64,000 bases of DNA from Bigelowiella natans CCMP2755 (GCA_000320545.1 ADNK01002770.1:1-64000), one strand, 5' to 3'; shown: positions 55,878 through 63,058, numbered from the stretch's first letter. The notes: a model not told the origin generated them from the letters alone. Translations and numbers: made by a program.

Positions 55878-58800
55878 TCACACCTTTCTCTTCCTACCTT
55901 TTCGCTTGTGTTTCTTTTCCCGTGCGTTTTTGTCAGTTCCTGTGACCTTTGACAGGAATGAAATGATCTTGTGAACTTCGTCAACGTTGTAGAATTCGCC
56001 AAAGATCATGTTACAAGCCACCATGGAGCTCAACAACTTTTTGAAAATGTCGCACGCCTCCGGTAAGTTCCCCAACTTAGAGTAAATTTTAGCGATTCTT
56101 TCGTACAAAAAGACAACACCTGGATGGGGTTTCGTCGTGCCGTACACCGCCAACAGCATATTCAGGGCCTTTTTGTATTCTTTGAGCGCCTCCGGGTACT
56201 TGCCCATGCTGTCATACACTCCCCCAATGTTGCTGTAGCTACTAGCCACATCTGGACGGGGTTTCGTCGTGCCGTACACCGCCAACAGCATATTCAGGGC
56301 CTTTTTGTATTCTTTGAGCGCCTCCGGGTACTTGACCATGCTGTCATACACTCCCCCAATGTTGTTGTAGCTACTAGCCACATGTGGATGGGGTTTCGTC
56401 GTGCCGTACACCGCCAACAGCATATTCAGGGCCTTTTTGTATTCTTTGAGCGCCTCCGGGTACTTGCCCATGCTTTTATACACTCCCCCAATGTTGCTGT
56501 AGTTACTAGCCACATCTGGATGGGGTTTCGTCGTGCCGTACACCGCCAACTGCATATTCAGGGCCTTTTTGTATTCTTTGAGCGCCTCCGGGTATTTGCC
56601 CATGCTGTCATACACTCCCCCAATGTTGCTGTAGCTACTAGCCACATGTGGACGGGGTTTCGTCGTGCCGTACACCGCCAACTGCATATTCAGGACCTTT
56701 TTGTATTCTTTGAGCGCCTCCGGGTATTTGCCCATGCTGTCATACACTCCCCCAATGTTGCTGTAGCTAGTAGCCACATGTGGACGGGGTTTCGTCGTGC
56801 CGTACACCGCCAACTGCATATTCAGGACCTTTTTGTATTCTTTGAGCGCCTCCGGGTATTTGCCCATGCTGTCATACACTCCCCCAATGTTGCTGTAGCT
56901 ACTAGCCACATCTGGACGGGGTTTCGTCGTGCCGTACACCGCCAACTGCATATTCATGGCCTTTTTGTATTCTTTGAGCGCCTCCGGGTACTTGCCCATC
57001 CTGTTATACACTACCCCAATGTTGCTGTAGCTAGTAGCCACATGTGGATGGGGTTTTGTCGTGCCGTACACCGCCAACCGCATATTCAGGGCCTTTTTGT
57101 GTTCTTTGAGCGCCTCCGGGTACTTGCCCATGCTTTTATACACTACCCCAATGTTGCTGTAGCTAGTAGCCACATGTGGATGGGGTTTCGTCGTGCCGTA
57201 CACCGCCAACCACATATTCAGGGCCTTTTTGCATTCTTTGAGCGCCTCCGGGTACTTGCCCATGCTGTCATACACTCCCCCAATGTTGTTGTAGCTACTA
57301 GCCACATGTGGATGGGGTTTCGTCGTGCCGTACACCGCCAACCGCATATTCAGGGCCTTTTTGTGTTCTTTGAGCGCCTCCGGGTACTTGCCCATGCTTT
57401 TATACACTCCCCCAATGTTGTTGTAGCTACTAGCCACATCTGGATGGGGTTTCGTCGTGCCGAACACCGCCAACTGCATATTCAGGGCCTTTTTGTATTC
57501 TTTGAGCGCCTCCGGGTATTTGCCCATGCTGTCATACACTCCCCCAATGTTGCTGTAGCAAGTCGCTATGACAGCCCTCTTATCTGATTTGGTCAATGGT
57601 TTATTTTTCGCGAAATTTGCAGATCCCTGGAACCAACTCAACGCTTTTTCATAAAGACATGCCACTTTACAAGCTTGTCCGATTGCCTGTGGCAATTCCC
57701 AACTGTGTTCTTCTTCTGAGGTATGAGTCATGAGTTGCCTCCCGTGCTGGAATACTGCAGCCCATTCTTCCTGGTTGTTATGCGAGTCACCAAAGTCACC
57801 TCCGTAGATAATCAGATTGTTGACCAGGTTTTTAAGGTTGGGTCGTGGCTGCAGGTACCTGACTATCTGTTGCGTGACAGCATGCATGCTTACATGTTTG
57901 GTTTTCCGACTCCATAGTATTAAAGAATACTGCTCTAGAAGGGCCAATGCTTTGCGGACTACTGTGTCCGTATTAGTCTCACTGCTAGAGAAATCCTGCT
58001 TGCCTTTCTTTTCATCCTCCTGGCAATTATCAATTTGATCCGACGCATCGTCCAATCTGAAAACCAATTCCAATGGTATGTTTTTTGGGTCCAGGTATGC
58101 CAGCCAATTTAATAACGCGAGTGCGCGTTTGCCGTGAACGTACGGAACGTGAGCGTGTTTCCCAGCATGATGGGCATGCTTCTGCCCGATCACGTCCAAG
58201 CAATTGCGAACCACTTCGACGATGCTCTTCGGGTACTCGATCATCGGTTTAGGGCTTTCGTCCAGAAACTCATCGAGAGATCGTCTTCTCCTGCGCAATT
58301 GCTCAATGCAGACTGCCACTTCATAATCCATTTCCCTGCAGTAACTGAAGAACTGTGCTAGAACAACGGGGTAACCTGAAAACTCAGTTTTTAGATGCTC
58401 CATGCACTTCTTCGTGTCATCTTTGGGACTCGGTATCGACAGATTGAATTTGCCGGCAAGCTGCACGAGGTCTTCATCTACAAACCCGTTGATTGACCAT
58501 CGTTTGACCTCCAAACTCCAATCAGTAGTTTTGCTGTTTCTAGACGTAAGGATTACATGACCTTGCGTCCGAGGTAGGAATTTAGCCACTGCCCTGCTAT
58601 CAGAAACATCGTCGAATACCAACAGGCAACTTTCAGTCTCGATTCGTTCCCTGATGCTTTGGATGGCTAATTTGATGTCCTTTTTGTCAACGAACAGGTC
58701 AGGGATTTTCTCAGCGATGCGCAAATAGTCGATCTGGAGCTGTTCGGGTGTTTGGCAATTCAACCAGTACGCGCGGGGGTACTGACCGGTTTCAATGAGG

Positions 58801-59294
58801 GTGTTGAACAACCTGACGGCCAACTGACTCTTTCCAATCCCTCCAGGGCCACACAAAAGGTGTACTTGTTTGCCAGCGTCTCGGAGTTCATGGAAAAACT
58901 TTTTGACTACGTCCTCTCGCCCTACGAAGAAAGGTACTTCATCTGGAGCAGGAATGAACGACATTGCCGCACGAAGTCTTTTCTGGAGTAAAATATAATC
59001 AAAAGATCTAATTTTAGATGGTGCACGTTTCCTCGAGGGAAGGCAAATGGGTGCCGCATCGACCGAGAAATAAATATGCGTTAGTGTAGAAGTCCGCATA
59101 AACATAGGCGAACACAATAGTGCACTTAAATTCAAAAATAATCTAGATTCAACCTTTTCCGCCTTTTTCTCTGCCTCAATTAGTTTCTTGGCAATGCACA
59201 CTAAATGCTGCTTATCCTCAAACAATTTTTTTTTGCTTTGAGATGCTGCAGGCACATCTTTTCTCGACATTTCTTTTGCCATCTTCATGCACAT
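55878..59294 (-). CDS. NB-ARC (STAND NTPase) - TPR NLR-like module, open 1138-aa frame
   Basis: FVGRE pre-P-loop; Walker A GPGGIGKS (58827-58850); Walker B LLVFDDV; sensor-1 VILTSR; GYP (GxP); LAYLDPKNIP; LEQYSLI; SMHAVTQ (MHD-like); then TPRs. A stop-free in-frame intron at about 59153-58984 is possible. Confidence 0.95.
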   Translation of the reverse strand: MCMKMAKEMSRKDVPAASQSKKKLFEDKQHLVCIAKKLIEAEKKAEKVESRLFLNLSALLCSPMFMRTSTLTHIYFSVDAAPICLPSRKRAPSKIRSFDYILLQKRLRAAMSFIPAPDEVPFFVGREDVVKKFFHELRDAGKQVHLLCGPGGIGKSQLAVRLFNTLIETGQYPRAYWLNCQTPEQLQIDYLRIAEKIPDLFVDKKDIKLAIQSIRERIETESCLLVFDDVSDSRAVAKFLPRTQGHVILTSRNSKTTDWSLEVKRWSINGFVDEDLVQLAGKFNLSIPSPKDDTKKCMEHLKTEFSGYPVVLAQFFSYCREMDYEVAVCIEQLRRRRRSLDEFLDESPKPMIEYPKSIVEVVRNCLDVIGQKHAHHAGKHAHVPYVHGKRALALLNWLAYLDPKNIPLELVFRLDDASDQIDNCQEDEKKGKQDFSSSETNTDTVVRKALALLEQYSLILWSRKTKHVSMHAVTQQIVRYLQPRPNLKNLVNNLIIYGGDFGDSHNNQEEWAAVFQHGRQLMTHTSEEEHSWELPQAIGQACKVACLYEKALSWFQGSANFAKNKPLTKSDKRAVIATCYSNIGGVYDSMGKYPEALKEYKKALNMQLAVFGTTKPHPDVASSYNNIGGVYKSMGKYPEALKEHKKALNMRLAVYGTTKPHPHVASSYNNIGGVYDSMGKYPEALKECKKALNMWLAVYGTTKPHPHVATSYSNIGVVYKSMGKYPEALKEHKKALNMRLAVYGTTKPHPHVATSYSNIGVVYNRMGKYPEALKEYKKAMNMQLAVYGTTKPRPDVASSYSNIGGVYDSMGKYPEALKEYKKVLNMQLAVYGTTKPRPHVATSYSNIGGVYDSMGKYPEALKEYKKVLNMQLAVYGTTKPRPHVASSYSNIGGVYDSMGKYPEALKEYKKALNMQLAVYGTTKPHPDVASNYSNIGGVYKSMGKYPEALKEYKKALNMLLAVYGTTKPHPHVASSYNNIGGVYDSMVKYPEALKEYKKALNMLLAVYGTTKPRPDVASSYSNIGGVYDSMGKYPEALKEYKKALNMLLAVYGTTKPHPGVVFLYERIAKIYSKLGNLPEACDIFKKLLSSMVACNMIFGEFYNVDEVHKIISFLSKVTGTDKNAREKKHKRKGRKRKV
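56118..57569 (-). repeat. 11 tandem near-identical 132-bp repeats encoding 44-aa TPR units
   Basis: Consensus VASSYSNIGGVYDSMGKYPEALKEYKKALNMQLAVYGTTKPHPH; 11 x 132 = 1452 nt exactly, followed by a degenerate 12th capping repeat. Confidence 0.98.
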
Positions 59295-62814: not shown

Positions 62815-62904
<90 letters not shown>

Positions 62905-63058
62905 CGTTGTGTGTGCGTTGTGTGTGCGTTGTGTGCTGTGTGTGTGTGTGTATGTGCGTCTCTCCCCCTCTTTTTCTTCATCTCTCCTTTTCGATGCATC
63001 TTTTTCTGTATGTCCGCTTACCATCAACACTCTCTGTGCCCTTCATCTCGGAGTTCAT
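59295..63058 (-). CDS. 5' part of NLR-like locus: SAM domain - CHAT (caspase-like) protease - first P-loop NTPase; carries apparent lesions
   Basis: Putative ATG 63058; exons 63058-63022, 62763-62591, 62449-62308, 61987-61917, ~61586-60375, 60196-~60070 and further. SAM: FSWRDAVRYFKAM..EKEEIDGMGLLDMKAEEM..RGRVRRVMRVL. CHAT: LDLETEYEII, FHYCGHG (His 61359-61361), IVFLAACHS (Cys 61215-61217), FAKAFYRRLLQGDTVLNAF. Walker A GGKGTGKT (60441-60464); Walker-B-like VIDRCE. Confidence 0.8.
60942..61007 (-). repeat. 33-bp in-frame tandem duplication (xALSILxGNVS x2)
   Basis: ggagacattgcctttaagaatggagagcgct followed 33 nt later by ggagacattgccttcaagaatggagagcgct. Confidence 0.9.
62815..62950. repeat. 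Compound intronic microsatellite (TC)n-(TG)n, representative of dozens across the window
   Basis: Read directly; similar (AT)n, (GA)n, (CA)n and (CTA)n tracts occur in most introns. Confidence 0.95.

Follow-up and report, generated by a model that had tools for sequence, protein, structure and literature searches.

A predicted NLR-type protein of Bigelowiella natans that joins a SAM-like domain and a CHAT protease to two STAND NTPases and a TPR array

NLRs that bear a CHAT domain have been described in fungi, where some of them control gasdermins, and in bacteria (PMC12881547), and NLRs with two NB-ARC domains in tandem have been described in wheat (WTN1). The CHAT protease of SAVED-CHAT, which has a catalytic dyad formed by H375 and C422, becomes active once ligand drives filament formation (10.1101/2023.06.23.546230). 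Here we analyse a stretch of 64,000 nucleotides from the chlorarachniophyte Bigelowiella natans CCMP2755 (GCA_000320545.1, ADNK01002770.1:1-64000), referred to below as the window. On its minus strand, from 63058 to 55878, the window probably holds one nuclear, intron-containing gene that encodes an NLR-type STAND protein with a caspase-fold CHAT effector fused in cis. The predicted protein consists of a SAM-like domain, a CHAT protease, a first NTPase (NTPase 1), an NB-ARC domain and a TPR array, and it has the tripartite architecture of effector, nucleotide-binding oligomerization domain and repeats on one chain. A preliminary description, made from the sequence, had listed these elements in this order and between these two ends; both the order and the coordinates hold.

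The CHAT-bearing NLRs of fungi and bacteria, such as the Anaerolineae proteins with the order EAD7-CHAT-NACHT-TPR (P0059 and P0218), likewise join CHAT in cis to a STAND NTPase with repeats of the TPR type, whereas the window gene has in addition a SAM-like domain at its head and, as its second NTPase, a complete STAND module of another ancestry. The closest protease of solved structure is SAVED-CHAT of Haliangium ochraceum (PDB 8tl0), in which the spacing of the catalytic His and Cys is equal and ligand activates the enzyme by oligomerisation; it differs in that its SAVED sensor binds a cyclic nucleotide and in having neither NTPase nor repeats, and the identity is about 21%. The apoptosomes of Apaf-1 and CED-4, with caspase-9 and CED-3, likewise combine an NB-ARC switch and a repeat sensor with a caspase-fold protease activated by proximity, and CED-3, caspase-9 and Dronc are among the structural matches of our model of exon 4. 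There, however, the protease is recruited through a CARD and the repeats are WD40, whereas the window gene would place its protease on the same chain as TPRs and two NTPases. An immune-type receptor with two successive nucleotide-binding domains is also seen in wheat WTN1, but there both are NB-ARC domains and are followed by LRRs, whereas the first NTPase of the window gene is a truncated and unrelated STAND domain. In SARM1 and TIR-1, SAM domains adjoin a death effector, and the SAM domain of TIR-1 is among our structural matches; these proteins differ in having no STAND NTPase and no protease. The NB-ARC-TPR proteins of Bacteroidota, finally, belong to bacteria, contain one NTPase only and have different effector heads. 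The full combination, in which a rhizarian alga joins a SAM head and two unlike STAND NTPases to a bacterial-type cassette, was not found in the literature searched, and no paper there dealt with Bigelowiella proteins of the NB-ARC or NLR type. The SAM-CHAT-double-NTPase-TPR layout is an unreported variant of a kind, the CHAT-NLR, that is already known in fungi and bacteria. The earlier remark that the combination was not a recognised one is fair for the full set, but CHAT-NLRs (PMC12881547) and the tandem NB-ARC domains of wheat had already been described.

The gene model comprises nine exons that join into one frame of 1,737 codons without a stop, beginning with an ATG at 63058 and closing with a stop codon at 55880-55878 (Table 1). 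It was built from the chain of tblastn matches to the paralogue P0001 (B. natans model Bigna1 142209) and the window sequence, with searches run exon by exon. P0001 matches the window colinearly from 61553 down to the TPRs. When the exons were aligned one by one with four paralogues, the window exon borders abutted without gap or overlap, and exons 4-9 aligned with the paralogues from end to end; all eight introns are GT-AG, and the splice phases agree across the nine exons. Most of the splice junctions are confirmed, because transcripts or gene models of B. natans paralogues match them. The junction between exons 2 and 3 (DLE/KEE), for instance, agrees with an uninterrupted paralogue transcript, and use of another donor 15 nt further downstream, which would end exon 2 at 62576, is less probable; no homology supports exon 1. 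Exon 9 runs from 58982 to 55878, so that the NB-ARC-TPR part forms one intron-less exon of 3.1 kb, with the remainder of the gene in eight exons. The open reading frames (ORFs) found mechanically on the minus strand (1,138 codons at 55878-59294, 474 codons at 60216-61640 and shorter pieces between and upstream of these) mix introns with exons and were dropped as a gene model in favour of the homology-guided one. The introns are short, and introns 1 and 3 contain long (GA)n and (CA)n microsatellites (62815-62956 and 62144-62199). The basic C-terminal tail, KKHKRKGRKRKV (55881-55916), resembles a nuclear localisation signal.

Close protein relatives come solely from B. natans. The five proteins that match exon 4 over protease, linker and P-loop, with the members of their clusters, make up a small family of two groups: the gene models 89576, 137400, 145316, 89319, 76696 and 142209, and short-contig ORFs from JGI sample 3300017192. 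The best database match of the NB-ARC part is 142209 (1,624 aa; 55% identity), which also carries a CHAT domain. Two contigs of the family, L001 (5.8 kb) and L002 (4.5 kb), have the character of spliced RNA. Both read straight through the sites of the window's introns 2, 4, 5 and 7 and keep a (TG)n-containing intron exactly at that of intron 6, the 5' border of exon 7; in a third, P0050 (contig L003), intron 6 has been removed and an intron at the site of intron 7, the 3' border of exon 7, is kept. In L001, the (TG)n tract fills the retained intron at about 3290-3470. L001 and L002 encode, in order, the SAM-like domain, CHAT, NTPase 1, a linker, a NACHT-type NTPase (NPHP3_N, E = 4.7e-23) and the start of a WD40 region, and their NTPase 1 has the motifs GGTRTGKT, ILLICDN and LLLTTSR, followed by MNPTLTKERFRRLF...ICNPGMC. 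The SAM-CHAT-NTPase 1 module is co-transcribed with a second STAND NTPase in these paralogues.

These transcripts bear on whether the window instead holds two neighbouring genes on the same strand, SAM-CHAT-NTPase and NB-ARC-TPR, that are never fused in mRNA. We consider this very improbable. The fusion at the window locus is predicted from the gene model, and a search found no RNA of the locus; Bigna1 89576 shows the N-terminal module without a second NTPase, and the mechanical ORF of the second half starts at an ATG (59294). Yet exons 5-8 are conserved, in phase and open into exon 9, the linker VFEDK.H.V.IA..LI that precedes the second NTPase is kept in three paralogues, model 142209 carries the identical fusion, and in L001 and L002 a single RNA spans the N-terminal module together with a second STAND NTPase. 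The preliminary description had already read the locus as a single chain, and the fitting phases, the alignment of exons 4-9 and the transcripts lacking introns 2, 4, 5 and 7 bear this out. A census with the NTPase 1 region returned two long relatives only. In P0001, residues 606-1035 and 1031-1533 are two nearly identical tandem NB-ARC modules, and the NTPase 1 P-loop stretch is missing; the tandem modules are either a recent internal duplication or an artefact of the assembly or gene model.

Exon 4 is predicted to encode a caspase-fold CHAT domain with a conserved His/Cys dyad. Its protease region matches Pfam Peptidase_C14 at 24.1 bits, above the cut-off of 21.4, and a family profile searched against the PDB matches the CHAT protein 8tl0 at E = 1.2e-23, with both His and Cys aligned; phmmer with exon 4 against the PDB had given noise only, and the profile search was needed. 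The Cys lies 47 residues after the His, as C422 does after H375 in SAVED-CHAT. An AlphaFold model of exon 4 has a mean predicted local distance difference test score (pLDDT) of 77.8 and a predicted template modelling score of 0.80, with residues 40-200 above a pLDDT of 90. With this model, Foldseek found 8tl0, an activated SAVED-CHAT filament (E = 1.5e-9; root-mean-square deviation (r.m.s.d.) 2.9 Å), and further caspase-11, CED-3, caspases 7, 8 and 9, Dronc and MALT1. The Peptidase_C14 match, the 8tl0 profile, the model and an alignment of 53 homologues all agree with the earlier claim of a CHAT domain with intact His and Cys. A HMMER search of the full library with exon 4 returned five proteins that cover protease, linker and P-loop, and about 560 others that cover the protease region alone; distant CHAT-STAND proteins occur in Norrisiella, Mataza and Anaerolineae. 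The window copy of exon 4 has a 33-nt tandem duplication (94% identical; 60942-61007, minus strand) that gives the 11-residue repeat ALSILEGNVSR/ALSILKGNVSK, seen in no paralogue, and, further on, a private insertion of about 19 residues.

The SAM-like domain is split by intron 2 in the window gene, and Pfam gave no match to its halves in exons 2 and 3. Pfam matches of the paralogue domain are weak (SAM_PNT, SAM_2 and SAM_3 at E = 0.1-0.15), as is a match to the SAM domain of SAMD1 (E = 0.13). A family profile that includes both window exons, searched against the PDB, matches the SAM domain of Scm over the whole domain (E = 9.3e-4), and 7 of the 12 listed PDB matches are SAM domains, among them Sfmbt, Ph and PHC3. 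The fold was modelled on the domain of the paralogue L001 (pLDDT 78), which is 41-47% identical to window exons 2 and 3. The top Foldseek matches of this model are SAM domains only, with a target-normalised template modelling score of 0.67-0.79 and an r.m.s.d. of 2.1-3.6 Å (CNK2, Scm, Ph, PHC3, Sfmbt, L3MBTL3, SAMD1, Shank and TIR-1). The assignment as SAM is accepted here for the family and is extended by alignment to the predicted window protein; the SAM domain named in the preliminary description is supported by the family profile and the paralogue fold, and not by Pfam on the window exons. The sequence matches to SAM are weak, though all in one direction. The best SAM matches are polymerising SAMs (Scm, Ph, PHC3 and Shank), which is a resemblance only.

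Judged by its motifs, NTPase 1 is a truncated STAND domain. Its Walker B motif, RIML/ICDN, is split over exons 5 and 6 and reads RILLICDN without interruption in paralogue transcripts; the domain also holds LLSTSR, a KERFKKLF helix and NPAMC at the GxP position. Since only about 90 residues lie between NPAMC and the next P-loop, NTPase 1 would be without a winged-helix subdomain: it falls short of a full module of nucleotide-binding, helical and winged-helix parts and ends after the first helical subdomain. In the paralogues, the Pfam NB-ARC match to NTPase 1 covers profile positions 12-141 only. The 474-codon ORF gave weak P-loop matches in Pfam at its C-terminal end; exons 2, 3 and 5-8, searched singly, gave no Pfam matches because they are too short. 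The preliminary description had recognised this NTPase by GGKGTGKT, VIDRCE and NPAMC. The first and last of these are real and conserved; VIDRCE was rejected as the Walker B motif, because it is intronic and has no counterpart in any paralogue. The residues after the Walker B Asp vary in the family: the motif reads CDN in three members with a second NTPase, CDD in Bigna1 89576, which has none, and IDDVDD in more distant paralogues. CDN hints at a loss of hydrolysis in NTPase 1, although the members are few and the pattern may reflect kinship only. An origin of NTPase 1 by internal duplication of the NB-ARC domain was also considered and rejected, as a phmmer search with the paralogue NTPase 1 retrieves members of the family and, as a weak match, the NTPase behind CHAT in Norrisiella, but not exon 9. 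The second NTPase, by contrast with the truncated first, has all the canonical motifs of a complete NB-ARC domain (Table 1): Pfam NB-ARC matches at E = 3.5e-13 (49.8 bits; cut-off 23.5), followed by DUF7779, and with five motifs located the earlier call of a complete NB-ARC stands.

The TPR array consists of 11 units of 44 residues and a degenerate twelfth. In the large ORF, Pfam TPR_12 matches at E = 8.7e-103 and TPR_10 in 11 stretches, and Tandem Repeats Finder reports a period of 132 nt, 10.9 copies and 95% matches at 56121-57559, all of which agrees with the 11 TPRs counted earlier. The DNA of units 2-11 is 94.9% identical, with variation at 13 of the 44 codons, a mean replacement divergence (dN) of 0.060, a mean silent divergence (dS) of 0.026 and a dN/dS of 2.3. 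Counted as minimal events, there are 17 replacement and 2 silent changes, where chance would give 80% replacement (P = 0.22). In its pattern, this variation resembles that of fungal and brown-algal NLR repeats. A 487-codon ORF antisense to the array (56124-57587, plus strand) is the 44-codon repeat unit read backwards, with no evidence of a gene.

The closest relatives of the NB-ARC-TPR cassette outside Bigelowiella are Bacteroidota proteins, with 31-40% identity over about 440 residues and E down to 1e-80 (at 37% identity), compared with E = 6e-7 for the best fungal match to the NB-ARC part. The Bacteroidota relatives, too, have an NB-ARC-DUF7779-TPR_12 layout, behind lipase_3, OTU or trypsin heads; across the NB-ARC relatives, the swappable heads are lipase, OTU, trypsin or TIR. 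One bacterial relative adjoins rpsL-rpsG-fusA on a 53-kb contig that is truly bacterial. Both Bigelowiella sequences fall within the bacterial group in a maximum-likelihood tree, with support of 99 and 98 in the Shimodaira-Hasegawa-like approximate likelihood ratio test. Counting against a bacterial origin, the taxa of this tree come from a single word-indexed search and the tree has no independent root. The base composition is not foreign, the GC content at third codon positions being 0.52 in the NB-ARC part and 0.49 in exons 2-8. The NCBIfam model FxSxx_TPR (NF040586) matches at E = 1.9e-33 with 115.9 bits, below its cut-off of 300, which makes the window cassette, by this profile, a relative and not a member. 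On balance, a horizontal origin from bacteria appears likely: a Bacteroidota-type NB-ARC-TPR cassette, now one intron-less exon, would have been joined to a resident CHAT-STAND gene. L005, the bacterial-type contig with the NB-ARC relative P0003, has four large co-directional genes, 22-50 nt apart, at 3126-10520; they include one for an OTU-domain protein, which suggests a conflict-system neighbourhood.

The C-terminal cassettes differ among the paralogues and are NB-ARC-TPR, NACHT-WD40 or, in 89576, a repeat region that could not be assigned. The last is an EST-extended model (EST, expressed sequence tag) with an MGCG start and no SAM, in which a different repeat region follows NTPase 1; reading these repeats as cold-shock-like barrels was unsupported, as Pfam and the PDB gave no assignment. 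In a tree of the N-terminal module, the window gene groups with 89576 and 76696 (support 99/98) and stands apart both from 142209, which has the same NB-ARC-TPR tail, and from the NACHT-WD40 transcripts. The tree does not follow the cassettes; together with the layout of 89576, this shows that heads and tails have been exchanged within the family. The suggested joining of an NB-ARC-TPR cassette onto a SAM-CHAT-NTPase gene also gains from the occurrence of the N-terminal module elsewhere with NACHT-WD40 or unrelated repeats, and from the cassette being intron-less and Bacteroidota-like.

Several results speak against this reading of the gene. A metagenome scan for the locus's own transcripts gave one paralogue contig only, with no RNA, protein or read record, exact look-ups of three window ORFs in an assembly index came back empty, and a homology search with a neighbouring ORF gave nothing either. 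Of the proposed profile scans, NB-ARC exceeds its cut-off and TPR_12 matches at E = 8.7e-103; the two window exons of the SAM-like domain have no Pfam match, and the Pfam CHAT score of the window copy is 20.3 bits, below the curated cut-off of 24 (paralogues score 30.6 and 28.3). In the NTPase 1 Walker B motif, Asn takes the place of the second acidic residue of most STAND proteins; the excess of replacement changes in the TPRs (17 versus 2) is not significant as a sign of positive selection (P = 0.22); and PADLOC found no match to an Avs or bNACHT model, giving a generic TPR model only. In the flanks, no gasdermin-like or other substrate gene was recognised among ORFs of at least 113 aa searched with Pfam (short exons could hide one), a possible difference from fungal and bacterial CHAT-NLRs; the sole Pfam match among these ORFs is an RNI-type LRR. 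PHROGs gave nothing useful. To these is added a blemish in exon 4 that the preliminary description does not mention. Just after the conserved strand QVPAHIAF, the window DNA has two extra bases, which leave the strand in another frame than the rest of exon 4 and put the protease's conserved first strand out of frame; the open frame survives only with the acceptor at 61586/61585.

With that acceptor, the first β-strand of the paralogues, VPAHIAF, is replaced by HCVHVP, which the model builds as the first strand in a block with a pLDDT of 87. With the acceptor implied by Bigna1 76696 (61558/61557), translation would stop about ten codons on, at about 61523. The window gene is either re-framed at exon 4 or very recently broken. 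A very recent pseudogene, or an assembly error, in which the ancestral acceptor just before AHIAF leads to an early stop and no full-length protein, is the less expected of the two and in our judgement unlikely. It would explain the two-base excess over three paralogue transcripts; the junction ENK/AHITF of P0213 fits the acceptor at 61558/61557, in phase with the exon 3 donor, and the 33-nt duplication and 19-residue insertion are private to this copy. Set against this, the remaining exons are open, with 1,737 codons in all including the 3.1-kb exon, an upstream acceptor with a better pyrimidine tract preserves the frame, the re-framed HCVHVP is modelled as the first strand, and P0213 is itself an ab initio model. 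One intact, re-framed gene is the more probable reading.

Table 1 Features of the predicted gene and of its motifs (window positions)
Feature	Position	Strand	Remarks
Exon 1 (tentative)	63022-63058	-	MNSEMKGTESVD; donor GTAAGC, phase 1; sole in-phase ATG exon upstream of exon 2
Exon 2	62591-62763	-	SAM-like domain, first half (TRKQFQDFSWRDAVRYFKAM...DTIADLE); 41% identity to paralogue N-terminal domain
Exon 3	62308-62449	-	SAM-like domain, second half (KEEIDGMGLLDMKAEEMFEVVKKRGRVRRVMRVLSSLE...); donor phase 1; 47% identity to paralogue L001
Exon 4	60375-61585	-	CHAT/caspase-fold protease, helical linker of ~170 residues, start of NTPase 1 with Walker A; 67% identity to Bigna1 89576
Frame blemish	61536-61546	-	two extra bases relative to three paralogue transcripts (DNA alignment)
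HYCGHG, catalytic His (His75 of exon 4)	61356-61373	-	invariant in 53 homologues
AACHS, catalytic Cys (Cys123 of exon 4)	61209-61223	-	present in at least 90% of 53 homologues
NTPase 1 Walker A, GGKGTGKT	60441-60464	-	conserved in paralogues
Exon 5	60071-60196	-	strand and helix of NTPase 1, ending ...KRIML (first half of Walker B); tblastn to P0001 and alignment
VIDRCE	59980-59997	-	inside intron 5, non-coding by homology; absent from P0001, P0200 and L001
Exon 6	59591-59710	-	ICDN (Walker B Asp, with Asn in place of the second acidic residue) and LLSTSR (sensor-1 Arg)
Exon 7	59394-59517	-	NTPase 1 helical subdomain (MDPTLNKERFKKLF...)
Exon 8	59154-59329	-	GxP-like NPAMC (59289-59303) and conserved linker to second NTPase
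Exon 9, first part	57858-58982	-	NB-ARC (~58278-58916) and DUF7779/winged-helix region (57858-58130)
NB-ARC Walker A, GPGGIGKS	58827-58850	-	
NB-ARC Walker B, LLVFDDVSD	58599-58625	-	
NB-ARC sensor-1 Arg, ILTSRN	58536-58553	-	
NB-ARC GxP, GYPVVLA	58356-58376	-	
NB-ARC MHD-like His, winged helix, SMHAVTQ	57870-57890	-	
Exon 9, TPR array	56139-57590	-	11 units of 44 aa
Exon 9, end	55878-56138	-	degenerate 12th TPR-like unit, basic tail KKHKRKGRKRKV, stop

By analogy with described systems, we propose how such a protein may act, from ligand and assembly to substrate and biological role. At rest, the NB-ARC domain would hold ADP and be kept shut by the winged-helix region and the TPR array. Binding of a ligand to the TPR array would open the NB-ARC domain, and nucleotide exchange would drive oligomerisation. 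NTPase 1, presumably unable to switch alone, may provide a built-in second layer of oligomerisation or act as a coupler, and the SAM-like domain may add head-to-tail clustering or recruit a partner. Once clustered, the CHAT domains would become active, as SAVED-CHAT does in filaments, and would cut a substrate, with death or arrest of the cell as the outcome.

A genuine fused STAND protease might also serve outside defence, in cell death linked to stress or development or in regulated processing, which we regard as improbable. Nothing in the analysis bears on the trigger, the gene has no defence-island context and no PADLOC match, and B. natans, according to PMC3734836, has no metacaspases of types I and III, so that a caspase-fold protease could serve general control of cell death. 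However, the family is lineage-restricted and multi-copy and exchanges sensor cassettes, the TPR array is nearly identical throughout with its variation focused at a few positions, and the heads of the nearest NB-ARC relatives are interchangeable (lipase, OTU, trypsin or TIR). All three traits are typical of conflict systems and may be indirect signs of a role in defence.

Elsewhere in the window, the plus strand at 42623-51718 has long ORFs of 381, 316, 216, 422, 192, 248 and 313 codons, with a GC content of 0.51-0.54 compared with about 0.45 elsewhere, hydrophobic segments and Ser/Thr/Pro-rich tracts. These ORFs have no Pfam or PHROG matches, and no homologue was found for that of 316 codons; the region has the appearance of a single large gene, poor in introns, that encodes a multi-pass membrane protein. 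The RNI-type LRR (Pfam LRR_6, E = 9.8e-7) lies at 51901-52293 on the plus strand, probably continuing to 52331-52480, some 3.6 kb past the 3' end of the NLR-like gene and convergent with it; it is either a separate small gene or the tail of the large gene upstream. On the minus strand, the end of an ORF at 18643-19227 matches the start of the profile of eukaryotic aspartyl proteases (Pfam Asp, E = 8.5e-6) and is probably one exon of an unrelated gene.

Protease-bearing NLR-type receptors are known from fungi and bacteria, and none has been described in Rhizaria. The window gene, with two dissimilar STAND NTPases one after the other, is a rare case, and its family is a natural experiment in receptor assembly, in which one effector module appears with at least three C-terminal parts, one of them apparently bacterial. 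The gene also offers a candidate for a death protease in an alga that reportedly has no metacaspases of types I and III, and, Bigelowiella being a culturable organism with a genome and transcriptomes, it is testable. Tentatively, and at odds that we put rather low, the family may be a private chlorarachniophyte set of single-chain 'sensor plus helper' death machines. These would have a constant executioner module (a SAM domain or lipid anchor, CHAT and a STAND NTPase without a winged helix), onto which STAND sensors of different ancestry, a horizontally acquired Bacteroidota NB-ARC-TPR in one case and NACHT-WD40 in another, would have been grafted by exon shuffling. The serial NTPases would then couple sensing to the protease, and the family may replace type I and type III metacaspases.

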